This document shows, one piece after another, positions 2,249 to 45,500 of a stretch of DNA of 61,706 nucleotides. Where the stretch lies: assembly GCA_002269645.1 (NCBI GenBank), contig NIVC01004076.1, positions 1 to 61,706 on the forward strand, written 5' to 3'. Both the position numbers and the translations under genes were made by a program. Position 1 is the first letter of the stretch. Every line of letters starts with the position of its first letter. The DNA comes from Macrostomum lignano (taxonomy: Eukaryota). Below the pieces are notes generated by a model. The model had not been told where the DNA came from. It ran no database searches and worked only from the letters and a program-made list of their open reading frames with translations.

Positions 2249-4490
2249 TCACCCGATAGAAACGCTACCGTGTCAAGGATCACAAAACACATAAAATTCT
2301 AGTAACTTTGTGGCGACTCTTGTAAACTTTAACGACTCAAATGACTGTAATTCGACGTAGAGGCGAATGTGAATTCAGAAACGTGTCAAGTGAGTTGTAG
2401 CTTCTTAAGAGTCGCAAAAGAGTCGTCCATGAGTCAATTTTAACAATAAACGCTGTTGGAATGATAAAGGCGCATATTTGAGGGAAAGAGTCAATTTTTG
2501 AAGGCAATGTTTCGTCGATAGACAGAGACGAGTTGGTTTTTACATTTGATTTTAATTGATACGTTCGTGCCAATCACGTGTATTGCAATCGTCGAGAATG
2601 CCATGTTTGCCAGAATGGGAGAAAGGCAGTTGAACTTCCTGGCAGTTTCCTGCCACATATTTGCTTGTAGTTTATTCGTTTTGCACACGGTTTCGCCTTA
2701 GAGTAAAAATACCGTATTGGTTGTAGACGCGGCTACATCTATCTGTGAACTTTTTTCTCGCTTTTATGGACAATGTTTGTGGACACGCATTTGATTCCAG
2801 CTAATCCACTCACACTTACAGGCAACTCTGTTGCTTTCAAAGCAAATTTACACACTGTAGGCAGTCAGTCAGTCTCGTGGCTCTTTCCCACTATGCTTTG
2901 CTAATGGAATGCAATTAAGAAAAAGCTGCATCGTAAAAGTCTTAGTGATAGTTTTTTCCCAGAGACAGACCTGATAGACAGAGGCTCTGCGTTTGATGGA
3001 CTCGCTCGCTCAACAAGTCAACATGCCACAGGGGTTATAAAGTTATCGATGAGGACAGCCTTTATTGACCGTTTGTCAAAGCTGAAAAGGCATCCTGGAC
3101 GAGTCGCTGTGCTCGCAACACGGTCTGAAGCTTCTGAAAATTTAAAATAAATTTAGATAATTCTCCGGTGTTATACATACGCAGGTTGAAGTTCATGTAA
3201 AATTGAGTGGCGCTACTGTCCACAGCTGACTCGTGCGATCATGACTTAATGCAAATTAAAATAACGAGTTGACTTTCTAATCTGTCGGCGCCTTTTGCTC
3301 TTCCTAACTCCTTTCCTGTCTTGCTAAATATAAAAGATGTGTCGCAAATCGGACATGGACTGACGTCACTAATACTTGCGGATTAAGAAGTGTAAACTAT
3401 ACCTTATGCTCGTGTACCAACCGGCCGAGTTCTACTTCGGCAGGGTGTTCCTCGTTCTGGCGCTGACGTCGGGCACGGTGGCCATCTGCGTGCTGCTGGC
3501 CTGGAACAACAGGACCGCTCGGCGAATGCACTCCGACACGGCCGGTGTTAGGGTTTCTGCTCTCCGGAGTTAAGGATCTCCGGCCCGGCGATCCAACCAA
3601 AAAAATTACGCGATTTTACAATCGCCCTCACGGATATCAGGAACCATGACATAAGATAAGGTTACAGATCGCCGCCATGCTAGACTCTCCGGAGTATTAT
3701 TATCTTAGAAAATTGGAAGATAAGAGATAAATTATTCATTTCTTTCTAGAATGTGATTCTAATTAGAAAGCCCAGCTCGTGAGCAGCCTATAGCTTGCGC
3801 AACTTTTTCGATGAGTTCATCCATCTAGTGCATCGTACATTTGCATGCCCTGTGAGGGCTAAATTTAGAGTTGGCCAGACTTGTGCATCATTTTTCGTCT
3901 CTGTGCATTTGTCGAGGGATTTGATTGTCATATATAAGCAGTGAAATAAAACATATTGTGAGTAATTGTCTGTTTGCGGTTATCTTTACTTTCTACTTGT
4001 CAAATGGCTACTTTGAATCAAATATTCTTTTATGTACTGAACAATGACTGCGCACAAATTCCTGTTGACTTGAACTCGAGAGAGAAAAGCAATTTGAAGA
4101 GGCGCATCAGGTAAAAGAGCAGAAATTTTAGCATTCACGATGGAGCATTGTTTTACATGGTGAAAAATAAAGATGGCAGTAAGCGCATGCGGCCCGAAGA
4201 CAGACGCAAGGTGCTGTTTACCGAGCAAGAAGTGCAAGTAAAGGTTTTGAGCCTTCATTCTCAAGGGAGCCATGTTGGCTTGAACAGCACCGTGAGTCTT
4301 TTCACGGCAAGGTACTATGCCGATATACCTGTAACACCGATTGCCAAAGCTGTGGTTCAGGCGTGTGCGAGGTGCGAAATGGTCAACAAGAAGTTTTCTT
4401 CAGCGCAGAAGGAGCTGCATCCCATTGAAGTTTCCAGGAATGCAGAGCGCCTCTTCGGCTTTTTGTGCATGGACTGCATCACAATGGAGG

Positions 4491-4616
4491 GCTCATCGGA
4501 AGTCAGAGTTTAAGGCAATGGCCTAATTGACACTCGCGGCTACCGCTAGTGTCGCTAGTGTAGCTACCGCCGCTCGTGTCAAAGGCCATTGCCTTAAACT
4601 CTGACTTCCGATGAGC
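4491..4616. repeat. Perfect 34-bp inverted repeat (fold-back hairpin) at the left Crypton end
   Basis: 4491-4524 GCTCATCGGAAGTCAGAGTTTAAGGCAATGGCCT is the exact reverse complement of 4583-4616. Inner pairing continues (TTGACAC/GTGTCAA, GCGGC/GCCGC). Confidence 0.95.
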
Positions 4617-4858
4617 ATCATTGCTTAAAATTTCAAAACTCTTACGTAATCTACGCACTTTATGTACACTATCGTGAATTCTTATCAGTCGATGCTGCTA
4701 AGGGGGTTTGAGATAAGGTTGCCTCCACCTCGCCTATGTCTCACCTTTAAGTCGCGCACCTGAAGTCAGCCACCCCTTACTCTGCACCCACCCCTAAATT
4801 AATTAAAAATATAAATATTTGCGTGTCTAGAGGTCAAATCTCAGATAGAGAAAAGCGG

Positions 4859-7056
4859 ATGGCTGCAGAGATGGAGGCACCGCTTATTAATTGGAAGTAT
4901 TTGCCCTGCAGTGAGCTGGGCAACGTGACCAAGGACGAATTAAATTTTGTTTCGGAGGCTTCTTACAATGACAGAAGGGACGACGAGTTCGCTAGATTCT
5001 CGAATTCATTCAAAAGGAGCCCGAGCCCGATGAGCATCTGCCGCTCCTGCAGGAAGGCGGCGTAGATATCAGCGCCATGGACATCGCCGAGATTGACAGC
5101 CTACCAGCAGACAGCAGGAAGCAGATGGACAGCGGTTCAAGACATTCCTCACAGAGGAAAATCTTCAGCGCAATTTACAAACCATTCCGAATTCGGTGCT
5201 CAACCAATACATTCGCTACTTCTACTTTAAACTGAAGAAGATTGACGGCGAACCCTACTCGCCCGCATCGCTGGTGTGCATCAGGGCTGGACTGCAGCGC
5301 TATTTGCGGATGATCGAGAAGCTAACCGTTGACATCATCAATGGAGAAGACTTTTCTTCTGCAAATAGCATGCTGCGTGTGAAGGTTCGAGACTTTCACC
5401 AGAGTGGTGGGAGGACGCAGCAGTTTGAGCCAATCGAGGAGGGGGACATGAGGAGCTGATGATCTACTTCCAAGGCAGCACAGCTGAAGTTGAGCAGGAC
5501 AAATTCTTATTCTACATCATATACAGCTTTGGCGAGCGAGGCCAGGAGCACCTCAAGTTCTTGAAGGATAGAAGCTCACTTCAATTGCACGTCGACTCTG
5601 ATGGAAAGCCGTACTACTGTCTGCCTCCGTTGCCCTCGAAAAATAAGTCAGCAGATCCAGAGAAGGCCAAGAAGCAGCCCGACAACAAGCAGGCCAGAAT
5701 TTACGACGTGGAAAAGGTGGAGAAATACCTCAAGCTGCTTCCAGTTACAACGAAGGACAACAATCTGTTTCCTCGTCCTTTGGCCAGCCGCAACGATGGA
5801 GGCCCTGTTTTCTCCTCGAAGCAGAACCGTGGAGAGAATTATCTGAGTGGCTTCATGAGAAACTTGAGTACGAAGGCGGGACTTGCGAAGACCTACCAAG
5901 GACGACTTAAGTAGAAGGACGGGAAACCTCGTTTCTTAGAAAATTTTTGAAGGCACTTTTTCCCGAAAAAATACACTGCGGAGATAGGAAATTTTCATTT
6001 TTTCAGCACAAAAATTGCTATAACTTTTGATAGGAGGCAGATCCAGTGTTGATCTTTTGATATGTTGTGCCTTTTTTATTGCTCTATCGATATTTATAAA
6101 GCTTTCCGTTCAGAAAATTAGGATTGTATGTTAATTTTTTATTCTACGTATATTTTCATGTGTCTTGTGCTTGAAATACATTAGAATGCCACGGCTCGGC
6201 TCTTTGGTTTTATGAGTCTATTTTATCCTTCTTACCTGACTGTATAGCAAATAGTCGTAACATAGATGATAAAATAGATTCATAAAACCAAATATTAGAG
6301 CTGTGTCATGCATTTTTGTGATTTTTAGATACAGGAAATATCCGTAGAATAAAAAATTAACATAGAATCCTAATTTTCTGAACGGAAAGCTTTATAAATA
6401 TCGATAGAGCAATAAAAAAGGCACAACATATCAAAAGATCAACACTGGATCTGCCTCCCATCAAAAGTTATAGCAATTTTTGTGCTGAAAAAATGAAAAT
6501 TTCCTATCTCCGCAGTGTATATTTTTTCGGGAAAAAGTGCCTTCAAAAATTTTCTAAGAAACGAGGTTTCCCGTCCTTCTACTTAAGTCGTCCTTGAGAC
6601 CTACACGAATCATTGCATTCGGTAAGACTGATAAATTAATAATAGTAACTTTAATTATGTTATGATACATGTTATGTTACCAATTACTCATGAATCCAAC
6701 TATATAAATTTGCACTCTAAAACAGGGTCACGCGAATATGCGATCTCGAGGCGGCAGGGCACAGAATGAGCGATATAATGAGCATTACTGGACAGCTGAG
6801 CGAGCGAGCGACTAGGAGGTACCTAGCCAAGCGTCGCGACCGGTCGCTTCAAAAGACGAGTGAGTCTGTTCAAGTGGCATTGAATCGTCATGATCTAGAG
6901 CAAGAAGCTGGGCCACCCGAACATGCTGATGCTGTTGAGATCGTCGGTGAGACTGTAGTATCGACGGAGGTTAGTGTTAGCACTGAAGCTGCCTATTCTG
7001 TTGATACGAAGTTTGCCTTCAACAATTGCACCTTTCACGGATGTTCCTTTAATTAG
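4859..7056 (+). pseudogene. Crypton tyrosine recombinase (DUF3504 / ZMYM-QRICH1-KCTD1-related), frameshifted and MITE-interrupted
   Basis: Contains LNQYIRYFY..KKIDGEPYSPASL...AGLQRYL, FGERGQE (catalytic R) and SKNK. After MITE removal the sequence reads KTY-TNHCIR. Intron 6622-6725 then gives RVTRICDLEAAG...IMSITGQ.S..ATRRY (Y present) and a C-terminal FNNCTFHGCSFN. Frameshifts occur near 5040-5100 and at 5455. Confidence 0.85.
5897..6596. mobile_element. 700-bp non-autonomous long-TIR element (MITE), possibly P-superfamily
   Basis: TIRs of about 250 bp start CAAGGACGACTTAAG and have few mismatches. The 8-bp TSD AGACCTAC lies at 5889-5896 and 6597-6604. CANRG termini with 8-bp TSD fit the P superfamily, but the family call is tentative. 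Confidence 0.9.
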
Positions 7057-8779
7057 GCATGCAATCTTTACTTCTACAGGAATCAGCAAATTGTACTCGT
7101 AGAATTACTGAAAGAATAAGAACGACAGTCTAGTATAATATTTTTTATTTAATGACTTTTAGTACTTTGCTCGACCAGTATGATGTTCATCACCGACAAA
7201 AATTTACATGATATACTGACACTGTGCTTTTTGTACTGTCGATTTTGCAATTCCTGTGCCAGTTTAATTATTTACATCTTAAAATAAACGTTTTGAATTG
7301 ACTGATGCAAGATACGCTTTGCAAGATGCTGGATAAAAACTGGCTTGAATTAATTGGTTGCATTGAAATTGGAATTCTAGGCAATGGCCTGCCATCGCCA
7401 TGGGTCATTGCCATGAGGAGAAATTTTGGGCAATGCCGACTACCACACCAAACGGTTCGAAATATATCCTGACTGTATGCTGCAAGTTTACAAAATTTTC
7501 CATTTTTCGGGCGTTGCCGAACATCAAAGCGCTGACTATCGCAGCCGAGTTAAAAAGCATCTTCGCGCTTTTTGGCTGGCCATTTGTCATTCTCAGCGAT
7601 CAAGTACGCGAGTTTTGCAACTCTGTCTTGGACGCCCTGCTGCAGTCCGGAGGAACGAAAAGAAGAGTGACCAGTGTTTACTACCCACAGGTAACCTTAA
7701 CAGTAATGTTTTATGCTTCTGATATTATGTAGCAGTGGTGCATCATTTTTAAGTACGAGTAAATAACTAATTTTCTCCAGACAAACGGTCAGACTGAGCG
7801 CCTCAACCAAACGTGCATTAATCTACTGAGAAAGCGGTGTGATTCTGAGGAACCAACTAACTGGGATTCCATGCTGAATGATGTTCAACTCGCATACAAC
7901 AGCCGCCGACATTTGGTGACAGGCTTCTCGCCGTGCAGGTAAAATATGAAAGTAATAAAGTTTATAGAGAATCAAGTATATTTTATAAAGCATATTTCTA
8001 TACTGTAGCAGACAATGTTAGTTCATATGCCTCCATTCATCTTTAGAGCCGCCTTTGGCTTTGAGCCATTGCTAGGCGATCATGCCGCAGCACTGGCTTC
8101 GGTTCCGGAGCCGATGGAAATCAACAGGCGATTGCTTGCCAACAAGGACAAGAAGCGAGCCGCAGCGCGAAAACTAATTGCGCGTAGAATCAAGATCGCT
8201 CAAGAAAAGATGCGACCAAGGACCTTGGATGCGACAGCGTCACTTGGTTTCGGCTGCTGGAGCTCAAGAGCTAAAGCGAGGAGACAGAGTTCGGCTTCGA
8301 AATCTGCGGAGGAATGATCGAAAGGGTGGCAAGATGCGATACACCTGGAGTCAGCAGGTCTACATCGCGACGAGGTGCCTCGGTCGCAACGTATATCGAT
8401 TAGGAGGTCTCACTAGACGTGTCAATGGCAGGCATCTCAAGAAGTGCTTTCTACAAGTACAATGGTTGAGCAAATCTCCAGTTTTTTATTAGAATCGCAT
8501 GCGGGATTCTGAACTGACAGCACTCGTACGAGTATTTATCAAAGGTTTCCAGCTCGTATTTTTGCCCTGGTATGGTGCATCACAGCTGCAAAATATACTG
8601 GCTACAGTGAAACGTTAAACTACGATCTTACGGAATGTAAAATGTCTTGAAATGGAAAAAATGACTGACATTGTTAGCGATTTTTACTACCTTTTATGCT
8701 TCGATGAAAATTGTTAAACGGTTAAGAGAAGGAAACTACAACAACACTCGTTGCACGATTACGATTTCGGACTTTATAA

Positions 8780-12560: not shown

Positions 12561-13613
12561 ATGAACAGCACCGACAATACTACTCATGTAGCAAATAAGC
12601 CATGGTTCCACGACCCCACCTGGAACTGGTTCATCTGGAACGTCTTCGTCTGGCTCTTTCCGCTGCTCTGTCTGGTCGGAGCGGTTGCGAACGCCGTCTC
12701 CTTCTACGTGATCGTGTCCAACAGGAAGTCGTTTCCCTACGTCACCAGGCAGTACCTCACCATCATCACTGCCAGTGACTTTCTCATTCTCACGTGCAAA
12801 GTGAGCACTCACTACTTTGGCTACATGGCATTCTACGTGAAGACGAACAAGTGGACCTGGTTCACTTTTCCAAGAGCCTGGGGACTCGCTTGGTGCATTG
12901 TGTACGACTTCTTTACATACTATGCAGTCATGGGTGTTCAGTTTTTTCAACTGGGCCTCATGGCGGATCGGCTGATTGCAGTAGCGGCTCCGATGAAGGC
13001 CAAGGTGATTCTGACTCACCGCAGAAGCTGGCTGATGCTGAGCCTCATCACTGCAATGTCACTGCTATTGCCGATCCTGTTCGTCGCGAATAGGAGGTGG
13101 AACGACGACACAAACTCGTGCGTTCTACGCAGTAAAGACTATTTAGTGAACGTGTACCAGCCGGCCGAGTTCTACTTCGGCAGGGTGTTCCTCGTTCTGG
13201 CGCTGACGTCGGGCACGGTGGCCATCTGCGTGCTGCTGGCCTGGAACAACAGGACCGCTCGGCGAATGCACTCCGACTCGGCCGGCTCTGAGCAGCAGCA
13301 GCGAAGCAACCGAGAGCGACAGAGGTCGCTTGTTCGGATCAGCCTCATGCTGGTCTTCATCAACGTCTTCTTTCTGATCACGTCTCTGCCGTGGAGTGTA
13401 AGCGCCCTGCTAGAGCGCGAGATCATCGAGCGCATGGGAGAGAAGTTCAACTCTATCATATTGTTTCACTTCAACTCGCTGCTGTACGCGAACAACGCTC
13501 TGTCCTGGGTGACGTACTTGATGGGACGGAACTTTCGAGAGGCGTTTCGCCGAGTGTGGCTGTCCCTGTGCTTCTGCTGCTGCGCTGCCTTCCGTCGTCG
13601 AGTGGACACTTAG
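12561..13613 (+). CDS. Class A (rhodopsin-like) 7TM GPCR, peptide-receptor-like, intronless (paralogue 2, 350 aa)
   Basis: Seven hydrophobic segments, N-terminal N-glycosylation sequons, TM1 GxxAN, TM2 ASDFL, DRL in place of DRY, Cys near TM3 and in ECL2, TM6 LPW, and a Cys-rich C-tail. Confidence 0.92.
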   Translation: MNSTDNTTHVANKPWFHDPTWNWFIWNVFVWLFPLLCLVGAVANAVSFYVIVSNRKSFPYVTRQYLTIITASDFLILTCKVSTHYFGYMAFYVKTNKWTWFTFPRAWGLAWCIVYDFFTYYAVMGVQFFQLGLMADRLIAVAAPMKAKVILTHRRSWLMLSLITAMSLLLPILFVANRRWNDDTNSCVLRSKDYLVNVYQPAEFYFGRVFLVLALTSGTVAICVLLAWNNRTARRMHSDSAGSEQQQRSNRERQRSLVRISLMLVFINVFFLITSLPWSVSALLEREIIERMGEKFNSIILFHFNSLLYANNALSWVTYLMGRNFREAFRRVWLSLCFCCCAAFRRRVDT

Positions 13614-14855: not shown

Positions 14856-16172
14856 TTTTTGTGTGACTCGTAAACCTAAGCTGCAGCTTTTAGAGAAAAA
14901 CCAACACTAATTAGCACCTAATACACTTTTCCCTGTAAATTATTTGATGCTATATTCTAATGATATTCATCGACTCTATCAACTGATTTATGCAACATTT
15001 ATCCAGGACTTACAGCCATTACTATACAAAAAGTCAGTATCCATGCCCTTTTGCGAGCGCGTAAAAACCCTTTAACAATGAGAGTTTTATTCAGTCCAAA
15101 TGCATAAATTTTGCTCCAAGTGAGCCGGTTAAAAGAAAAATCTGCGATTACTTTTTTGGAAAAGACTTTCAGAAACTTTTCCTGATTAAGACAAAAATCT
15201 GGTTCCGTCAGAATTGAACGGCAAACAGTCCGCTTGTCAGCATTGTCCGCCCAACTCCGGATAAACCGGCTGAATCGTTCTTAGCAAAGAGTTTTTTCTC
15301 TCCGGCTTGTATCGATTTATACGTTTGTTTTACTAGGCCATGCTTCCTGTGGAGTTCAACTATTGAGCAACTCAAGTTTCTGTTGACGCACGATTAACTG
15401 ACTCTTGCTGACACGTCAATTAAAACTTATTTGCACCAATGAGGAAGTAATTTCTAAAGACAAAGAGTTACCTTTAAAAATGACGATTTGTCGAATGCTG
15501 AGATAATTTCCGTAGCATTGTCGCAGCCTGACTTACGACTGATTCCCGTCGCCAAGCTAAACAGCTTTTTGTGTGCCGCACTGCCACCTACCCAAGCTTG
15601 TCTTCCAAGCGACCCCTATCATCTTCGTCCATCTTGTTGATTGAAGTTCAAGACTTGCACAGCAGCCGTGGCGACTTGTAGCTACCTGTGAGATCAAGGT
15701 GGGTCGATGATTTTTGCAGCCATCTAAAGGCCATGCATAGTTTGGAACGCGTTTTTGCGCGAGGCTCTGTCTGCAGTTTATTTCGTTCTTTCTGATCGTT
15801 TCTGTCTGATTCCTGTTTAGTTCCTTCGTGGCCTTTGAGCCTCTTTTTGTTTGGTTGTGCGTTTGAAAGACTTAATGACGGGTATCTGGCCCCGCTGATC
15901 GAATTCTTGTGCTAGTTTGATGCATTTCGTTTTCTTATTGCGAAGTAGACGCAATTGCGAATGAAGTCTCATTGCTAAGGGACTTCCACATGGACATACT
16001 TGCTAGAGAATGAAGAGTTACACAACTAAAAAAACAATTAAAAACCGAAATTGCTACTTTAAGTAAAATATTAAAATATCTGAGCATTAATCTTTAGACA
16101 ATAAAAGTGGAATCAGTAAAGTCTCACCTTTTCCAACTTATCAAATGCGCTCATATTCAGCAAAGCAAGCGA

Positions 16173-16968
16173 TTCTCATTCTCACGTGCAAGGTGAGCAC
16201 TCACTACTTTGGCTACATGGCATTCTACGTGAAGACGAACAAGTGGACCTGGTTCACTAATTCGAGAGGTTGGGGACTCGCTTGGTGCCTTGTGTACGAC
16301 TTCTTCACCTACTATGGGCTGGTAGGATCCCAGTTCTTTCAACTGGGTCTCACGGTAGATCGGCTGATTGCGGTAGCGGCTCCGATGAAGGCCAAGGTGA
16401 TTCTGACACATCGGAGAAGCTGGGTAATGCTGAGCATGTTCATGTTCATGTTCGTCGCGAATCGGACGTGGAACGACGCCACTAACAACTGTGGATTACG
16501 AAGTGTCAACTATCTAGTGAACGTGTACCAGCCGGCCGAGTTCTACTTCGGCAGGGTGTTCCTCGTTCTGGCGCTGACGTCGGGCACGGTGGCCATCTGC
16601 GTGCTGCTGGCCTGGAACAACAGGACCGCTCGGCGAATGCACTCCGACTCGGCCGGCTCTGAGCAGCAGCAGCGAAGCAACCGAGAGCGACAGAGGTCGC
16701 TTGTTCGGATCAGCCTCATGCTGGTCTTCATCAACGTCTTCTTTCTGATCACGTCTCTGCCGTGGAGCATCGGCGCTCTACTAGAAGACCAGCTGGTTAC
16801 TGAACTTGGAGCAACCCTTTCATATTCAACTCGCTGCTGTACGCGAACAATGCTCTGTCCTGGGTGACCTACTTGATGGGACGGAACTTCCGAGAGGCTT
16901 TTCGCCGAGTTTGGCTGTCCCTGTGCTGCTGCTGCTGCGCCGCCTTCCGTCGTCGAGTGGACACTTAG
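16173..16968 (+). pseudogene. GPCR paralogue 3, 5'-truncated with TM4 and TM7 deletions
   Basis: Starts inside TM2. TM4 is collapsed into ATGTTC repeats near 16435. A deletion and frameshift occur near 16812-16825. Otherwise it is nearly identical to paralogues 2 and 4. Confidence 0.92.
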
Positions 16969-21897: not shown

Positions 21898-23132
21898 CTC
21901 CACTGGAGCTTGCGGGAACGCCATCGCCGCACAACCTCCAGTTAAAAGTGAGTGCACCAATTATACTACTTACTGCGCAATGTAAATGCCAAGCAACTCT
22001 TTTCGAATTGGATTGAGGCAAAAATCGTGACAGAATCTGGCAAAGGGAAATCTTTGTCTCTGACTTAGCTGAGCTGGTGGGTTGAAATGATCTGACGGAG
22101 TCGATGACTTGCAATAATTGCGCCTAATCTGACTAATGAAGCTTCTGTTGAATGTAACTATGCTGTTCCATCCTTGGAGTCACAAAGTAATCATTTTGGA
22201 TCTTTTCTATAACGCCATCGGTGCCACATTGAGAGTGTTTGAGTTGATAGAGCGGATCACAAATAGCAATCACAAATGTTTAAGAATCCTCTCGAATCCT
22301 TGATCAAGAGATGAAAAAGCTATTTTTTCTGGAAAGGTTTTAACGGGAAAATACATAATTGCTTAACAAATTGGGGCATTTAGTGAAGCCTGGTTCTTGC
22401 AAATAAAAAATCCAAGGCACGAAAAGTACCTCCAGTTTTCCCTAGTCTTTTGGCTTATCTAGCTATTTTTATTGAAAACGAAACGCAAGCAGGTGTTTTA
22501 CAAGCAAATCGACTGTTTGCTAAAGCTTATACAGTTACAGCACGCAGAAACATGAGCGCTAAATTTTTTTTTGGTGCGCAAACAAGAAGCTGTCACACCA
22601 GCCTTTATCATCGCTTTTATACTATGCATGAATGGCGTGAAGGTGTAAAAAAGCCGGATGGTAAGCTCACACGTGGCCTTGAATTTGTACAGGCAAAGCT
22701 TAAACTGTGTGATGCCGCGTGCGTGACTAAAACAGCTTAGTTGTTCAATCATTCTCTGGATTGCATAACACGTGTGTAGGGAGACACAGTTTGTCGAAAA
22801 GCGAAAACGCAACACCGGGCTTCCGGCAAACACACGCGCGACACGCAATATTGTAAGGCAGCTGATAAAATGGACACAACTGAGAATACAGAGACACGTG
22901 AATTGCATTAATAATTCAAGACCAGCCACTCGAAATTCTAAGCATCCAGCTGTGTCTTTCACAGGACAAGGACAAAACACCCGGTAAAATGAAGATGAGT
23001 TTGCAGCCCACTGATCTGCCTTAATATTGCTCTTGCCGGCAGAGGCGTTACATTGCATGGTTTCATGTCAGGCTCGTAGGTTTGTAAACAAAAAATGGTA
23101 AAACGATATCTACGTGTAAGGGGTCTCTCTAG

Positions 23133-23354
23133 TGGTTGCTTTCACAAAGGCGAAATTTCACAACCGCTAATCACCTTCTTTCATAAACGCGAAATTTCAT
23201 AACCGCGAAACTTCACAACCGCTAAATCACCTACTTTCATAAGCACTAAACTTCACAAACGCGAAATTTCACAACCGCTAAAAAGACTGCCGTATATGAA
23301 AGTAAGTGCAAAAATTTTAGCGGTTGTGAAATTTCACGCTTGTAAAACCCACCC
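23133..23354. mobile_element. 222-bp MITE with 38-bp imperfect TIR and internal motif array
   Basis: An 8-bp direct repeat CTCTCTAG lies at 23125-23132 and 23355-23362. The motif (A)AATTTCACAACCGCTAA is repeated internally and inverted at the right end. Confidence 0.7.
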
Positions 23355-23399
23355 CTCTCTAGGACTTGACTTGAGACGGTGCTGCTGGTACGTGCGAGC

Positions 23400-24310
23400 G
23401 TAATCATATTGGCTTCGAGTTTTTAAAGCAACCACGAGATTCGAATAATGAATAAAAAAACTGAAACCCTGGTTCTCTCCATGGATCGATCCGCCCTTAG
23501 TCTTGTTGGATTTTAAATTGACTTCTTCCCTTGTTGGATCCGGACTTCCACAAATAGGCGCTGAAGCGTGGCGACTGTCCATCATGAACTGCTGTGGGCT
23601 TCATATCGGAGTTGCCTGGATGCTTGGATCGTGCGACTAAATTATCTTAGGGAGCTCAGGGAGCGTAATCTGGGATCCAGGCTCACTCACCATGTCTCTG
23701 TCCTCAACGATATTGTATGTACCTTCACATCGCGCCATCTGATGACTTTTTTTCACCTCTGAAGTCAACCTCCGAGCGTAGATACGATTGGTGCACGGAA
23801 AAGACCTTAAGTATGATTTTGCTTTCCCTTCTGCTTTGGAAGTGTTGCTGACGATACAGAGACTACGTACTTCTCATGATTCCTTTCCAGTACCAAAAAG
23901 ACATAATGCTGACTCCAGACATCGTCGAGTCTTGGGTGTTGGAATATTCTCTAGGCAATATTTATTTCTCTGAAAGCGTTCTCCAACGATACGATCAAGG
24001 GTGTGGTCATGCTAGCTAGGCCCTCTCGGTGAGTAGCCTAGGTGATTCACTCCACTCATTCATGCAGCAGCGAAAGAATGTCAATAGCAGATCAAAAGCA
24101 ATATAGCAAAGAAGCAAGTGGGGTTTATTCGAGATGCCTGGATATTGATATGTGTAATATATTTCGGCTAAAGTAAAAGGAACTATTGACAGAAGCATCA
24201 TTGCTCCTCAGTTGCTTTACTGATTGATTAAGCATCTCATCGATCAATACTTTCCCAAAGTTTCATCCAACAAGCAAGGAAACTTTTCAAGGGGATTGAT
24301 TGATTTTCAA
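23400..24310 (-). pseudogene. Possible highly decayed piggyBac-like transposase relic
   Basis: Scattered fragments NPLEKFPCLLDETLGKVLIDEMLN and NKTKGG (compare YNxTKGGVD) occur in the expected order, but with many stops and frameshifts. Confidence 0.25.
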
Positions 24311-24745: not shown

Positions 24746-25822
24746 ATGAACGAAACAAACTCTAGCAATCCTCAGGAGCCCTGGTTCCACGACCCCAACT
24801 GGAACTGGTTCATCTGGAACGTCTTCGTCTGGCTTTTTCCGCTGCTCTGTCTGGTCGGAGCGGTCGCGAACGCCGTCTCCTTCTACGTGATCGTGTCCAA
24901 CAGGAAGTCGTTTCCCTACGTCACCAGGCAGTACCTCACCATCATCACTGCCAGTGACTTTCTCATTCTCACCTGCAAGGTGAGCACTCACTACTTTGGC
25001 TACATGGCATTCTACGTGAAGACGAACAAGTGGACCTGGTTCACTAATCCGAGAGGTTGGGGAATCGCTTGGTGCATTGTGTACGACTTCTTTACATACT
25101 ATGGGCTGGTAGGATCTCAGTTTTTTCAACTGGGTCTCACGGTAGATCGGCTGATTGCGGTAGCGGCTCCGATGAAGGCCAAGGTGATTCTGACACATCG
25201 GAGAAGCTGGGTAATGCTGAGCCTCATCACTGCAATGGCACTGCTACTGCCGATCATGTTCGTCGCGAATAGAACGTGGAACGACGCCACTAACAACTGT
25301 GGATTACGAAGTGTCAACTATCTAGTGAACGTGTACCAGCCGGCCGAGTTCTACTTTGGCAGGGTGTTCCTCGTTCTGGCGCTGACGTCGGGCACGGTGG
25401 TCATCTGCGTGCTGCTGGCCTGGAACAACAGGACCGCTCGGCGAATGCACTCCGACACGGCCGGCTCTGAGCAGCAGCAGCGGAGCAACCGAGAGCGACA
25501 GAGGTCGCTTGTTCGGATCAGCCTCATGCTGGTCTTCATCAACGTCTTCTTTCTGATCACGTCTCTGCCGTGGAGCATCGGCGCTCTACTAGAAGACCAG
25601 CTGGTTACTGAACTTGGAGTCAACCCTTTCATATTGATGATGCGGCACTTCAACTCGCTGCTGTACGCGAACAACGCTCTGTCCTGGGTGACGTACTTGA
25701 TGGGACGGAACTTCCGAGAGGCGTTTCGCCGAGTGTGGCTGTCCCTGTGCTGCTGCTGCTGCGCCTCCTGCCGTCGTCGAGTGGACGCTTCGGGCAGCAG
25801 CTCGACGGCGAGCACTCGATAG
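24746..25822 (+). CDS. Class A GPCR, intronless (paralogue 4, 358 aa)
   Basis: Intact ORF with the same 7TM motifs as paralogue 2 and a CCCCC tail. Confidence 0.92.
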   Translation: MNETNSSNPQEPWFHDPNWNWFIWNVFVWLFPLLCLVGAVANAVSFYVIVSNRKSFPYVTRQYLTIITASDFLILTCKVSTHYFGYMAFYVKTNKWTWFTNPRGWGIAWCIVYDFFTYYGLVGSQFFQLGLTVDRLIAVAAPMKAKVILTHRRSWVMLSLITAMALLLPIMFVANRTWNDATNNCGLRSVNYLVNVYQPAEFYFGRVFLVLALTSGTVVICVLLAWNNRTARRMHSDTAGSEQQQRSNRERQRSLVRISLMLVFINVFFLITSLPWSIGALLEDQLVTELGVNPFILMMRHFNSLLYANNALSWVTYLMGRNFREAFRRVWLSLCCCCCASCRRRVDASGSSSTASTR

Positions 25823-28779: not shown

Positions 28780-29895
28780 ATGAATAACACAACAGCTGCT
28801 GGCCTAGAGAGCGAAAGAAATACAACCAGCGAGTTTGGCGATCCTATATGGAACCAGTTTGCCTGGGCCGTCTTCATATGGCTGTTTCCGCCGCTCTGTC
28901 TGGTTGGAACAATCGCCAACGCCGTCTCCTTCTACGTGATCGTGTCCAACAGGAAGTCGTTCCCCTATGTCACCCGGCAGTACCTCAGCATCATCACTGC
29001 CAGCGACTTTCTCATTCTCACGTGCAAAGCGAGTACACATTATCTGATCTATATCAAAAGCGTATCGGACTCAAACACTATCTTTCTGTCACCGAGAGCC
29101 TGGGGACTCACCTGGTGCATTGTGTACGACTTCTTTACCTACTATGCGCTGGTGGGATCCCAGTTCTTCCAGCTGGGCCTCACGGTGGATCGCCTGATAG
29201 CCGTAGCCGCTCCGATGAAGGCCAAGGTGATTCTGACGCATCGAAGAAGCTGGGTGCTGCTAGGCCTCATCACTACGATGTCGCTGCTACTGCCAGTCAT
29301 GTTCGTCGCGAACCGGACGTGGCATAACGGCAATTGTGTCTTCCGCAGCCAACAGTACTTCGAAATTGTGTACAAGTCGGTGGAGTTCTACTTTGGTAGG
29401 GTGTTCCTGGTCTCCGCTTTAACCTCTGGCACAGTGGCCATCTGCCTGCTGCTGGCCTGGAACAACAGGACCGCTAGGAGGTTGGACATCGAGGTGAATG
29501 CCACTGAATCGCAACAGCTGCGTCACAAATATCTGGTCCGCATCAGCCTGATGCTGGTCTTTATCAATTTAATCTTTCTGGCAACAGCCCTGCCATGGAC
29601 CATTTCAATTCTAACGGAGGACCAGTTGACCACAGTGATGGGCCAGGACTTTTACTATCGAATGCTCCGCCATTTCAACTCGATCCTGTACGTAAACAAC
29701 GCAGTAAGTTGGATTGCCTATTTCATGGGCCGCAATTTTCGCGAGGCCTTTTGCCGCTCATTGCGAACAGAGCAGCTGCGCCGCCGCTGGCAACAAAGGA
29801 GCGGTCAAAGGCCGTCCGGCCTGGCGCCGCAAGCAAGGGACGCCGAGATCGAGGACTTGCAGGTGGAGACGACGCGGTTTTTAGCGGAACCATAG
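28780..29895 (+). CDS. Class A GPCR, intronless (paralogue 5, 371 aa, most divergent)
   Basis: Intact ORF with TVDRLIAVAAPMKAK, a shorter ICL3, and a different C-tail without the poly-Cys. Confidence 0.92.
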   Translation: MNNTTAAGLESERNTTSEFGDPIWNQFAWAVFIWLFPPLCLVGTIANAVSFYVIVSNRKSFPYVTRQYLSIITASDFLILTCKASTHYLIYIKSVSDSNTIFLSPRAWGLTWCIVYDFFTYYALVGSQFFQLGLTVDRLIAVAAPMKAKVILTHRRSWVLLGLITTMSLLLPVMFVANRTWHNGNCVFRSQQYFEIVYKSVEFYFGRVFLVSALTSGTVAICLLLAWNNRTARRLDIEVNATESQQLRHKYLVRISLMLVFINLIFLATALPWTISILTEDQLTTVMGQDFYYRMLRHFNSILYVNNAVSWIAYFMGRNFREAFCRSLRTEQLRRRWQQRSGQRPSGLAPQARDAEIEDLQVETTRFLAEP

Positions 29896-42522: not shown

Positions 42523-45500
42523 TCAGAAGCTCGGCATGGGACAAGCCGGTCGGTACTGATCGTTGAGCACATTGAGCAGGACAGACATGACTGTCCACTT
42601 GCGATTGTGAGACTCCGGCCACACGAGGCTTCGCTTTGAGTCGTAGAAAATATCGTCGGTGACTTCCTCCTGCTTGCGGGGCAGGCAGTGCATAAACACC
42701 CAGCGCGGCTTGGCGTGCGCCACCAGGCTGGAGTTCACCTGAGCGGGGTTGGACAGGTGTTAATTGTTTATCTAGTTAGATGAGATCATAAAATAAGGTA
42801 GGCTTAATAATTACTGCACTCCAGACTGATCTGTGCCGCTAGATAAGGTGAGATAATTACTGCACTCCTGACTGATCTGTGTGCCGCTAGATAAGGTGAG
42901 ATAATTACTGCACTCCTGACTGATCTGAGTGCCGCTAGATAAGGTGAGATAATTACTGCAGTCCTGACTGATCTGAGTGCCGCTAGATAAGGTGAGATAA
43001 TTACTGCACTCCTGACTGATCTGTGTGCCGCTAGATAAGGTGAGATAATTACTGCACTCCTGACTGATCTGAGTGCCGCTAGATAAGGTGAGATAATTAC
43101 TGCAGTCCTGACTGATCTGAGTGCCGCTAGATAAGGTGAGATAATTACTGCACTCCTGACTGATCTGAGTGCCGCTAGATAAGGTGAGATAATTACTGCA
43201 CTCCTGACTGATCTGAGTGCCGCTAGATAAGGTGAGATAATTACTGCAGTCCTGACTGATCTGAGTGCCGCTAGATAAGGTGAGATAATTACTGCACTCC
43301 TGACTGATCTGTGTGCCGCTAGATAAGGTGAGATAATTACTGCACTCCTGACTGATCTGAGTGCCGCTAGATAAGGTGAGATAATTACTGCACTCCTGAC
43401 TGATCTGAGTGCCGCTAGATAAGGTGAGATAATTACTGCAGTCCTGACTGATCTGAGTGCCGCTAGATAAGGTGAGATAATTACTGCACTCCTGACTGAT
43501 CTGTGTGCCGCTAAATAAGGTGAGATAATTACTGTACATTTAATGATCCCTACCGATGGCTAGGTGAGCTAATTATCGCCAATGAGGCAAGATAATTAAA
43601 CATGATTAATTAGTGTTAACCTGTAATTCATAGTTAATAATATTTGTTAAGTTGAGCTGAGCCAGCACCTGAGATGCCTCACCTGGAACCCTTTGAAATC
43701 TTTCAGGCGGCGCTCCTTCTCCGCCTCGCGGCCCATACTGACGAATGTGTCCGTGACGATGACGTCAGCGCCGCGAACCGCCTCGGCGGGATCTCTGGTG
43801 AGCACCAGCTGGGTGCCGTACTGGCGGCTGAGCTCGCGGGCGTCCTGCACCACGGCCGGATTCGGGTCATAGCCCGCGGGCGAAGCGATGCGGATCTGCG
43901 GCGACGAAGAGGTTGTTTTGTGGGATACCGTTGAAGGACCAGCGGGACAGGTATTGAAGGCACAGGGAAACAGGTATTGAAGGCACAGGGAACAGGTATT
44001 GAAGGCACAGGGAACAGGTATTGAAGGCACAGAGGAACAGGTATTGAAGGCACAGGGGAACAGGTATTGAAAGCACAGGGGAACAGGTATTGAAGGCACA
44101 GGGAACAGGTATTGAAGGCACAGAGGAACAGGTATTGAAGGCACAGGGGAACAGGTATTGAAGGCACAGGGGAACAGGTATTGAAGGCACAGGGAACAGG
44201 TATTGAAGGCACAGGGGAACAGGTATTGAAGGCACAGGGGAACAGATATTGAAGGACCAGCGGGACGGACAGGTATTGAAGGCACAGGGAACAGGTATTG
44301 AAGGCACAGGGGGACAGGTATTGAAGGCACATGGAAACAGGTATTGAAGGCACAGGGGAACAGGTATTGTAGACACGGGGAAAAGGTACTCAAGGCACAG
44401 AGGAACAGGTATTGAAGTGACAGGGAAACAGTGGAACAGGTATTGAAGTACTAGGGTCCAGTGAACTGAAAAACCAGATAGATAGATAGATAGGTAGATA
44501 GATAGATAGTAAGGTACTGAAAAACCAGATAGACAACCAATTAAAGGACAAGAGACACAGCAATGAAAGAGCCAGGGGGAACAAGCATTGCCTGACAGGG
44601 GGCAATACTGATGAGGAATTACTGAAATAGGATTTCAGCCCAACCCAAACCCCGGTATGCTCACAGACATGCCCAGCTTGGGGCAGCCCATCATCAAGGA
44701 GTGCGTCATGTTGTTGTCTCCGTCGCCTACAAAAGCCCACACGAGGCCGTTGAGGTGGCCAAAGTTTTCGTACGCGGTGAGAAAATCGGCCAGCACCTGC
44801 AGCGGATGGTACTGGTCAGACAGGCCGTTCACTATGGGCACGCTGGAGTGCTCGGACAGGGTCATCTGGACGGGAATTGAGAGGTAGGGAGCATTAAATT
44901 CGTTATACTTAGTCACTAAACCCAACCTGAATCTCACTAAGCCCAAAATGAATCTCACTTATCCCAGCCTGAATCTCACTAAACAACAAAACCTGAATCT
45001 CACTTACACCCAACCTGAATCTCACTTACACCCAACCTGAATATCACTAAACCCAACCTGAACCTCACTAATCCCAAAATGAATCTTACCAAGCCCTACC
45101 TGAATCTCACTAAGCCCAACCTGAATCTCACTCAGTCCAACTATCATTTCATTTATCCCAACTTGAATCTCACTAAAACCAATCTGAATCTCACTGTCCA
45201 ACTGGAAGCTCACTCATCCTGACCTGAAGCTCACTCATCCAAACCTGAATCTCACTCATCTCAACCTGAATCTCACTAAGCCCAACCTGAATCTCACTTA
45301 TCCCAACCTGAATCTCACTCAGTCCAACTGGAATCTCACTCATCTCAATCTGAATCTCATAAAGCCCAACCTGAATCTCACTCATCTCAATCTGAATCTC
45401 ATAAAGCCCAACCTGAATCTCACTCATCTCAATCTGAATCTCATAAAGCCCAACCTGAATCTCACTAAGCCCAACCTGAATCTCACTCATCTCAACCTGA

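Follow-up and report, generated by a model that had tools for sequence, protein, structure and literature searches.

A stretch of 61,706 nucleotides of Macrostomum lignano DNA (contig NIVC01004076.1, forward strand; hereafter, the window) was analyzed. It is eukaryotic DNA, and at positions 4487–7435 it contains a mobile element of 2,949 bp, or about 2.2 kb if a nested miniature inverted-repeat transposable element (MITE) is left out. This copy of the element is dead and defective. We read it as a Crypton-type DNA transposon whose one gene product is a Cre-like tyrosine recombinase of the animal CryptonA/DUF3504-QRICH1 lineage. It would have inserted itself into an integrase gene through site-specific recombination at the word CAATG, not through target-duplicating cut-and-paste. 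A palindrome found at one end only would be a dedicated attachment module, the active form of which is probably one folded strand or a cruciform arm. Taken as a whole, this reading appears to us probable. About 50 related elements have the module in common, a conserved, strand-polar palindromic end that we have not found described for Cryptons.

The element interrupts a host gene, and the following features mark the junctions.

4148–4486, plus strand: N-terminal part of the host integrase, with an HHCC zinc finger and the start of the rve domain; the gene resumes at 7436.
4482–4486, plus strand: left crossover word CAATG, common to host and element; after deletion of 4487–7435 the host reads ...ATC ACA ATG|CCG ACT...
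7436–7700, plus strand: rve core of the host integrase, resumed 3′ of the insertion, as judged from the frame and the Pfam rve match.

The same short word, CAATG, stands at both boundaries of the element (4482–4486 and 7431–7435), as in Cryptons, which are recognized by a shared word of 4–6 bp and not by a variable duplication. Excision of 4487–7435 in silico produced a single unbroken host reading frame (...LFGFLCMDCITM|PTTTPNGSKYILTV...), and Pfam rve crosses the rejoined joint without a gap, residues 104–197 being aligned with positions 6–102 of the 102-position profile. A first-pass annotation of this DNA, made from the letters alone, had proposed a Crypton-type element bounded by CAATG, and the restored frame and the rve match across the joint bear this out. 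A 5-bp target-site duplication made by a DDE transposase was considered and rejected: the bases adjoining the duplication do not form an inverted repeat. Such a duplication is also disfavored by the fact that CAATG is built into the terminal inverted repeat (TIR) of the element and recurs in other families. The interrupted gene as a whole (4148–4486 continued from 7436 to about 8490) encodes an HHCC finger, an rve core and a C-terminal GD.V...K-like tail. No reverse-transcriptase frame was seen in the 4 kb upstream of it; the integrase may be solitary or Ginger/GIN-like rather than part of a long-terminal-repeat retroelement.

At the left end of the element a palindrome is set between the crossover word and its inverted copy, and at the right end the element tip repeats, in inverted orientation, the sequence that follows the palindrome.

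4487–4490, plus strand: 4-nt spacer GAGG between CAATG and the hairpin, read from the sequence.
4491–4616, plus strand: left palindrome with perfect 34-nt arms (4491–4524 and 4583–4616), complementary at 34/34 positions, with 58 nt between the arms.
4514–4523, plus strand: inner word GGCAATGGCC in the left arm, with its inverted partner GGCCATTGCC at 4584–4593, found by word search.
4617–4618, plus strand: inner 2-nt spacer AT, from hairpin to TIR, read from the sequence.
4619–4634, plus strand: left TIR CATTGCTTAAAATTTC, which begins with the inverted crossover word and matches 7420–7435 at 14/16 positions.
7365–7412, plus strand: right subterminal module, with GGCAATGGCC at 7380–7389 and an imperfect inverted copy GGTCATTGCC at 7403–7412, found by word search.
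7420–7435, plus strand: right TIR GAAATTTTGGGCAATG, which ends in CAATG (7431–7435) and matches 4619–4634 at 14/16 positions.

The perfect 34-bp stem reported at first pass was confirmed, all 34 pairs being present; DNA folding of the left hairpin gives −58.9 kcal/mol compared with −18.6 ± 3.0 kcal/mol for shuffled sequences (z = −13.4). The hairpin further comprises inner sub-arms (4527–4540 and 4569–4582), a tandem TC/TC mismatch (4534–4535 opposite 4574–4575) and a degenerate 28-nt center with a 9-nt tandem duplication (4544–4561). Hairpins of such length are rare in the window, where the only others are those of the nested MITE and of a repeat cluster at 23.1–23.4 kb. The inverted crossover word, CATTG at 4619–4623, lies on the inner side of the hairpin, and the resulting order, CAATG, 4 nt, hairpin, 2 nt, CATTG, places an inverted crossover core at the base of the palindrome, as in integron attC sites. 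The sharing of one arm word by both ends, also claimed earlier, held as well: exact copies of GGCAATGGCC are found at 4514 (plus strand), 4584 (minus) and 7380 (plus), a one-mismatch copy at 7403 (minus), and none elsewhere in the 61.7 kb. The shorter GCAATG/CATTGC has six sites in the 233 nt of both termini, compared with 0.55 per kb windowwide. Searches against RNA families returned just miRNA-like matches far below threshold and no tRNA, and a reading of the hairpin as an RNA gene was rejected.

The 16-nt TIR had been overlooked in the first-pass annotation; its left copy lies just inside the hairpin and its right copy is the tip of the element. We estimate the chance of a 14/16 match at two preset positions at about 1e-6. 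Because 4619–4634 inversely repeats 7420–7435, the element consists of a body bounded by TIRs and of a hairpin that is joined on beyond the left one. In the papers searched, Cryptons (Goodwin 2003; Kojima & Jurka 2011, PMC3212892) are described as lacking TIRs and as bounded only by direct repeats of 4–6 bp. Published animal Cryptons are said to carry neither direct nor inverted terminal repeats, 'n.d.' (not detected) being entered for every CryptonA and CryptonI element, and a 2026 paper on CryptonA elements repeats the description of no terminal repeats. Its enzyme and boundary word place the element among the Cryptons, yet it departs from this description in having a 16-nt TIR and a terminal palindrome. 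In the papers searched we found no description of a Crypton end with a hairpin, palindrome or stem-loop, and nothing relevant on a circular intermediate, Repbase and Dfam entries being outside this search.

The small hairpin proposed earlier for the right end proved weak: its arms form 9/10 pairs plus one G:T, and the fold is no better than that of shuffled sequences (z = −1.0). The 26 nt at 7365–7390 are 77% identical to the left hairpin arm. A right-end hairpin was also rejected as a general trait, being present in the related loci L002, L006, L010, L011 and L019 and absent or non-significant in others.

Between the termini the sole coherent reading frame is that of a recombinase, and the element has neither a reverse transcriptase nor a DDE transposase nor any further mobility enzyme.

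4859–7056, plus strand: tyrosine-recombinase pseudogene, with ATG at 4859, stop at 7054–7056 and an intron at 6622–6725.
5897–6596, no strand assigned: nested 700-bp fold-back MITE, a later insertion and not part of the Crypton, with an 8-bp duplication AGACCTAC at 5889–5896 and 6597–6604.
7283–7288, plus strand: AATAAA, a likely polyadenylation signal, in a context (TAAATAAACGTTTT) common to the window and L002.

The frame is shifted three times (near 5000, 5127 and 5450) and the gene is split by the nested MITE. Its only intron is of the GT-AG type, and the relative L002 (69% identical) has an intron at the same place. The window recombinase keeps the motifs GERGQE, TNHCIR and ITGQ..RRY; the first two, together with ITGQLSERATRRY, represent the R...HxxR...[H/W]...Y signature, and a family profile aligns HxxR and the catalytic Tyr with XerA. 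The stitched window protein matches Macrostomum lignano "Tyr recombinase domain-containing" proteins (57% identity, E 5e-104), and uncharacterized, unnamed relatives at 69% identity. Pfam Phage_integrase matches were obtained for 5 of 11 relatives. Against QRICH1 the window protein scores 22.8 bits (cut-off 30.8), and the relatives P0012, P0014, P0017 and P0019 carry DUF3504 and QRICH1 matches. For P0004, an intact relative, the AlphaFold model (mean pLDDT 70) has Cre as its best structural match (E 3e-9, TM 0.68), followed by the integron integrase IntI, XerA, Tn1549 Int, XerH and QRICH1. In a flatworm clade (P0001–P0010, window 6766–7056) the second catalytic His is replaced by Gln (TGQ), and the full-length relatives all end in a Cys-pair motif, F-x-[ND]-C-x-F-x-[GN]-C-x-F, the window form of which is FNNCTFHGCSFN. 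As to the nested MITE, its arms of about 270 nt are 98–99% complementary, and a hAT-type origin is suggested because of its CAAGG...CCTTG ends and its 8-bp duplication.

Relatives of the element come from Macrostomum lignano, from oyster and from many metagenome contigs; L005, L010, L011 and L013 are short Logan/JGI/ENA contigs. A first metagenome scan, led by an alignment of the window, matched 600 stretches, none of which was a relative, while a second, led by P0004, returned 280 relatives and 80 further loci. The same layout recurs among them: word, spacer, hairpin, spacer, inverted word with TIR, gene, and TIR ending in the word. Of the 80 metagenome loci, 34 have a strong hairpin no more than about 700 nt from the recombinase gene, and hairpin density near the gene is 0.43 per kb versus 0.09 per kb further out. 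The hairpins of relatives fold far better than shuffled sequences (z from −7.9 to −16.8). Pairing of the hairpin-adjacent TIR with the far tip amounts to 14/16 in the window, 16/16 in L001 and in L014, 15/16 in L016, 14/16 in L025 and 17/17 in L005, and is also seen in L022, L024, L011, L013 and L006/L018.

Several loci illustrate this layout. L001, from Macrostomum lignano, has a hairpin at 5617–5720 (z = −10) and, 2 nt further on, a 23-nt TIR that pairs with a copy on the far side of the gene, at a distance of 1.8 kb. L014 copies the design of the window: CAATG, 5 nt, hairpin, 3 nt, CATTGTTATTAGTTTG ... CAAACTAATAACAATG (16/16), the whole being flanked by CAATG...CAATG. The outer and inner spacers measure 4 and 2 nt in the window, 4 and 2 nt in L001 (GGTA and GC), 5 and 3 nt in L014 and 6 and 3 nt in L017b. 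In all four short contigs a large hairpin or its remnant stands upstream of the gene and an arm word recurs near the far end, with a TIR after the hairpin wherever the contig extends far enough. The hairpin is 40–290 nt upstream of the gene in closer relatives and downstream of it in more distant clades. Oyster L012, with a "KIAA1958-like" gene, has the mirror arrangement: the TIR is 14 nt long and a palindrome of 143 nt stands directly outside its other copy, with AACTGTT words common to the palindrome and the opposite subterminal region. In the same locus the hexamer GTTTGT is found at the outer edge of the left TIR (2816–2821) and again just past the palindrome (5317–5322); to judge by this placement, it is possibly the crossover word of the L012 family. 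The 5′ region of L002 was rejected as a full hairpin (z = −1.4), and this contig most likely starts inside or after the palindrome.

The expectation that the target is always CAATG stood in part. The word is terminal in the window, L014, L017 and L019, whereas other families end in CAATA(T) (L016, L006, L011) or in GATAAT. The first-pass annotation had also named findings that would overturn its proposal, among them other copies without hairpins and a hairpin that is an independent mini-MITE. On the first count, homologous elements keep the hairpin despite changed sequence. The second amounts to saying that the 126-bp hairpin is an unrelated fold-back MITE, inserted beside or together with a conventional Crypton lacking terminal repeats. 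Fold-back MITEs do exist in this genome, one of them nested in the Crypton itself; however, no target-site duplication surrounds 4491–4616, the window holds no other copy of the hairpin, and the host frame is restored only by joint removal of hairpin and Crypton. Moreover, the hairpin has the same position and spacing in Macrostomum lignano plus more than 10 other families, its inner motif GACAC-GA-GCGGC is near-identical to that of L001, and in relatives it always accompanies the gene and the TIR. We find a stray MITE hardly credible.

Hairpin arms are 0.80–1.00 complementary within a locus, compared with an identity of 0.53 between loci (0.48 for shuffled arms). Pairing is maintained in the arms, not sequence, which between families has diverged almost to randomness; this is compensatory evolution of the kind that the first-pass annotation had proposed to test. 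Internal loops were surveyed in 39 non-redundant hairpins, and the commonest was a 2x2 GA/GA loop, flanked as pyrimidine-GA-purine in 62 of 70 cases, mostly as C-GA-G. Often two or three such loops occur in one hairpin, spaced 17–24 bp apart. The tip loops read C-GTTA-G or C-GNA-G (collectively G(N)NA), on the same strand as GA/GA. In hairpins upstream of the gene the sense strand carries 10 GA/GA and 1 TC/TC loops; downstream of the gene it carries 28 TC/TC and 3 GA/GA, so that there GA/GA is antisense, and two of the three exceptions lie in what is really the upstream hairpin of a following array unit. Polarity tracks the element end that holds the hairpin, not gene orientation, which speaks for a function at the DNA level and against one in the mRNA of the recombinase. 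In the class with a known boundary the GA strand has the crossover 5′ of its hairpin, and the same would apply to the mirror class. In L006 (1744–1835) and L018 (111–222) the outermost loop is an unequal purine bubble, GA opposite GAA, the inner loops being GA/GA; a small mismatch bubble of this kind gives asymmetry to the terminal hairpin of a rodent parvovirus.

DNA hairpins are classically stabilized by tandem sheared G.A pairs in a pyrimidine-GA-purine context and by G(N)NA loops with a closing C:G pair. On the opposite strand the same positions give destabilizing T.C pairs, and in an ordinary duplex features confined to one strand are meaningless. A folded strand is favored as the substrate mainly because the C-GA-G mismatches and G(N)NA caps are found on one strand only and have no duplex meaning. 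Alternatively, the palindrome could act purely as a duplex, as an inverted cluster of binding words in which GA/TC would do no more than make the half-sites unequal and so give direction; the arm-type and core-type sites of phage attP and the FRT-bearing inverted repeats of the 2-micron plasmid are comparable. The repetition of the words in each arm and at each end agrees with this, as do the P0004 fold, nearest to that of Cre, a duplex-site enzyme, the near-equal computed stability of the two strands and the lack of a wobble-pair bias. It accounts less well for arms that are unconserved between families and nevertheless stay complementary over 20–87 nt, beyond what binding sites need. Up to three nested GA/GA loops with a spacing of about 20 nt would, in a duplex, lie 40–120 bp apart, and the tips are G(N)NA loops closed by C:G, known as stabilizers of DNA mini-hairpins. 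Overall, we judge a purely duplex site rather unlikely.

The position of the hairpin in closer relatives, 40–290 nt upstream of the gene, would also suit a different function altogether, in which it is not a recombination site but a promoter or regulatory palindrome, or serves replication or maintenance of an extrachromosomal form as an origin, a priming hairpin or an asymmetrically resolved junction like that of parvovirus terminal hairpins. GNA-capped GC mini-hairpins do occur at single-strand origins, and mismatch bubbles give parvoviral junctions their asymmetry. However, the window hairpin lies 4 nt from the crossover and is bracketed by inverted crossover words, and it shares words with the far end. 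In distant clades the hairpin is downstream of the gene and has the opposite polarity, which makes it unfit for a promoter or a 5′-UTR (untranslated region) element, and the element encodes no replication protein. A replicative or regulatory role is therefore considered improbable.

Some relatives form head-to-tail arrays; the window contains none. L017 consists of two complete head-to-tail units whose genes are about 64% identical in DNA and whose hairpins (67–164 and 2161–2254), each bracketed by ACAATG...CATTGT, are 96% identical. Because what precedes the first hairpin looks like a unit's right end, this array has at least three members. The difference between 64% and 96% suggests strong constraint, gene conversion or exchange of hairpin modules between families. 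In L019 an element of another family ends in ...AACAATG and is followed directly by the start of an L017-type hairpin. Loci L006 to L009 share the right end ...GCGAACAATAT, past which L006 enters the hairpin of its own family and L007 unrelated sequence; L018 has the L006-family hairpin behind a different flank, and L006 is a head-to-tail junction. By analogy, these junctions match integration into the attachment site of a resident element, or a circle junction, and resemble integron cassette arrays. It is tempting to generalize to a widespread animal Crypton lineage whose strand-polar GA-mismatch hairpin is recombined as a folded single strand or cruciform arm and stacks cassette-like arrays, a proposal that we make tentatively.

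From the boundaries, anatomy, conservation, strand polarity and arrays described above we infer the following course of recombination. The module, consisting of the crossover word, a short spacer, an imperfect palindrome of 60–190 nt, a shorter spacer and the inverted word leading into the TIR, would be the substrate. The element would leave as a circle, its tips closing round the hairpin, so that right TIR, hairpin and left TIR would make one palindrome of about 170 bp, with the crossover word at its left (5′) base and the inverted copy at its right base. The recombinase probably binds the repeated GG(G)C-N-AATG words in both arms and near the far end, and strand exchange would take place at the word adjoining the 5′ base of the hairpin. 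The partner could be any genomic CAATG, as in the window, or the same site of a resident element, which would give head-to-tail arrays. In its active form the GA strand would be folded as a hairpin or cruciform arm, like integron attC or the CTX phage site.

The long palindrome at a circle junction, together with the four-way junction at a cruciform base, which is a natural substrate of tyrosine recombinases, could equally bring to mind a telomere resolvase. The enzyme would then cut the junction palindrome into two closed hairpin ends, and the free form would be linear. Yet the boundary of the element is at the base of the palindrome and not at its center, the centers are imperfectly symmetric and end in 3–4-nt loops, and the structural matches of P0004 are Cre, IntI and Xer, with no resolvase in the top 50. 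Resolution of this type is very improbable.

Several observations weigh against site-specific recombination of a folded strand as we propose it. The family is known in the window from one copy (4487–7435), with no second copy, empty site or circle junction beside it, and no further copies of the element, its hairpin or the nested MITE are found within the 61.7 kb. This copy alone breaks the polarity rule, having a degenerate tip and a single tandem mismatch, TC/TC when read on the sense strand. The mismatch, CAC-TC-GCGGC ... GCCGC-TC-GTG, reads GA/GA on the minus strand and nearly matches the Macrostomum lignano motif GTCAC-GA-GTGGC-GAA-GCCAC-GA-GTGAC, but inverted. The exception could be due to inversion of the loop, easily imagined with perfect 34-nt arms, or to decay of a dead copy. 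A right-end hairpin is absent or non-significant in the window, L001, L003 and L013. The hairpin was not seen in about half of the metagenome loci; many of the contigs without one are short, and assemblies tend to break at palindromes. Fold energies of the two strands differ by 0–3 kcal/mol in either direction, a comparison that is uninformative in a nearest-neighbor model, which handles sheared GA pairs poorly. A strand preference in G:T wobble pairs, hinted at by all three mismatches of the window TIR and right hairpin being G:T on the plus strand, was rejected, G:T and A:C being counted 6 vs 5 and 8 vs 12 over the 39 hairpins. Finally, a strictly duplex mode of action is possible. The att-like or attC-like architecture put forward at first pass has thus gained strand-specific GA mismatches in relatives and arrays, and its right hairpin is not significant in the window; between a folded strand and a duplex we infer the former.

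The rest of the window contains other repeated features. Tandem single-exon genes resembling seven-transmembrane receptors are present at 12561–13613, 16145–16867, 24746–25822 and 28780–29895; they share long identical stretches (for example ...NRKSFPYVTRQYLTIITASDFLILTCK...), and one copy is truncated. A receptor-like fragment (3376–3573) immediately precedes the integrase. At 23128–23439 a unit of about 32 nt (TTCACAAACGCGAAATTTCACAACCGCTAAAA) is present in a cluster of copies, some direct and some inverted. A glycine-rich open frame occupies 1484–2248, and the repeated units in the translation of a minus-strand frame at 43647–44393 point to a tandem repeat.

No class of eukaryotic DNA transposons is less well understood than the Cryptons, whose ends have been called featureless since 2003. 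We know of no demonstrated mechanism of Crypton transposition. A structured end module offers a way to locate the true boundaries of Cryptons and of their non-autonomous derivatives in annotation, and it is a concrete candidate for the substrate of the recombinase. If the proposed mechanism is correct, this may be the first eukaryotic case of folded-strand recombination, so far known from bacterial integrons and filamentous phages. The lineage also gave rise to the domesticated vertebrate DUF3504/QRICH1 genes, and the DNA structure used by their ancestors may bear on what these proteins bind. Tool builders could also take an interest in a recombinase that is small and self-contained and has a portable hairpin site and a short target word.

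Among known systems, CryptonA elements share with the window element a single DUF3504/QRICH1-related tyrosine-recombinase gene, a length of about 2.2 kb, the same short boundary word and presumed integration of a circle; the 16-nt TIR, the long strand-polar terminal palindrome, the subterminal words and the arrays of relatives set the window element and its relatives apart. DIRS elements are likewise eukaryotic and have a tyrosine recombinase; their terminal repeats, together with an internal complementary region, presumably restore a recombination site in a circular intermediate. They are retrotransposons, however, with a reverse transcriptase and long inverted terminal repeats, whereas the Crypton has no reverse transcriptase and a compact hairpin outside one TIR. 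Cre, the best structural match of the recombinase fold, acts on an inverted-repeat site with an asymmetric core; loxP, however, is a 34-bp duplex with an 8-bp spacer, while in the Crypton the inverted words are separated by a hairpin of 60–190 nt.

Closer parallels are found in bacteria and their phages. The integron attC site is an imperfect palindrome of about 60–140 nt in which structure counts over sequence, with an inverted core at its base and the crossover in the outer core. Strand-specific imperfections and arrays, as seen in the relatives, and secondary targets that need a short core only are further points in common with the attC/IntI system, and IntI is among the structural matches. 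In contrast to integrons, an attI platform is missing, every Crypton unit has a recombinase gene of its own, and the host is animal; tandem GA mismatches take the place of extrahelical bases as imperfections, and the folded strand of the Crypton is deduced from sequence. The attP(+) site of CTX phage, like those of other elements that use XerCD on a folded single strand, brings together two inverted sites about 90 nt apart in a forked hairpin, and the few unpaired bases near the foot of that hairpin are comparable to the 4-nt and 2-nt spacers of the window. Elements of this type borrow host recombinases and have a single target site, dif, whereas the Crypton enzyme is self-encoded and its target is a 5-bp word. 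By analogy, and as part of a reading that we consider probable as a whole, the element would work most like an integron attC site or the CTX phage site, while standing outside both of those systems.

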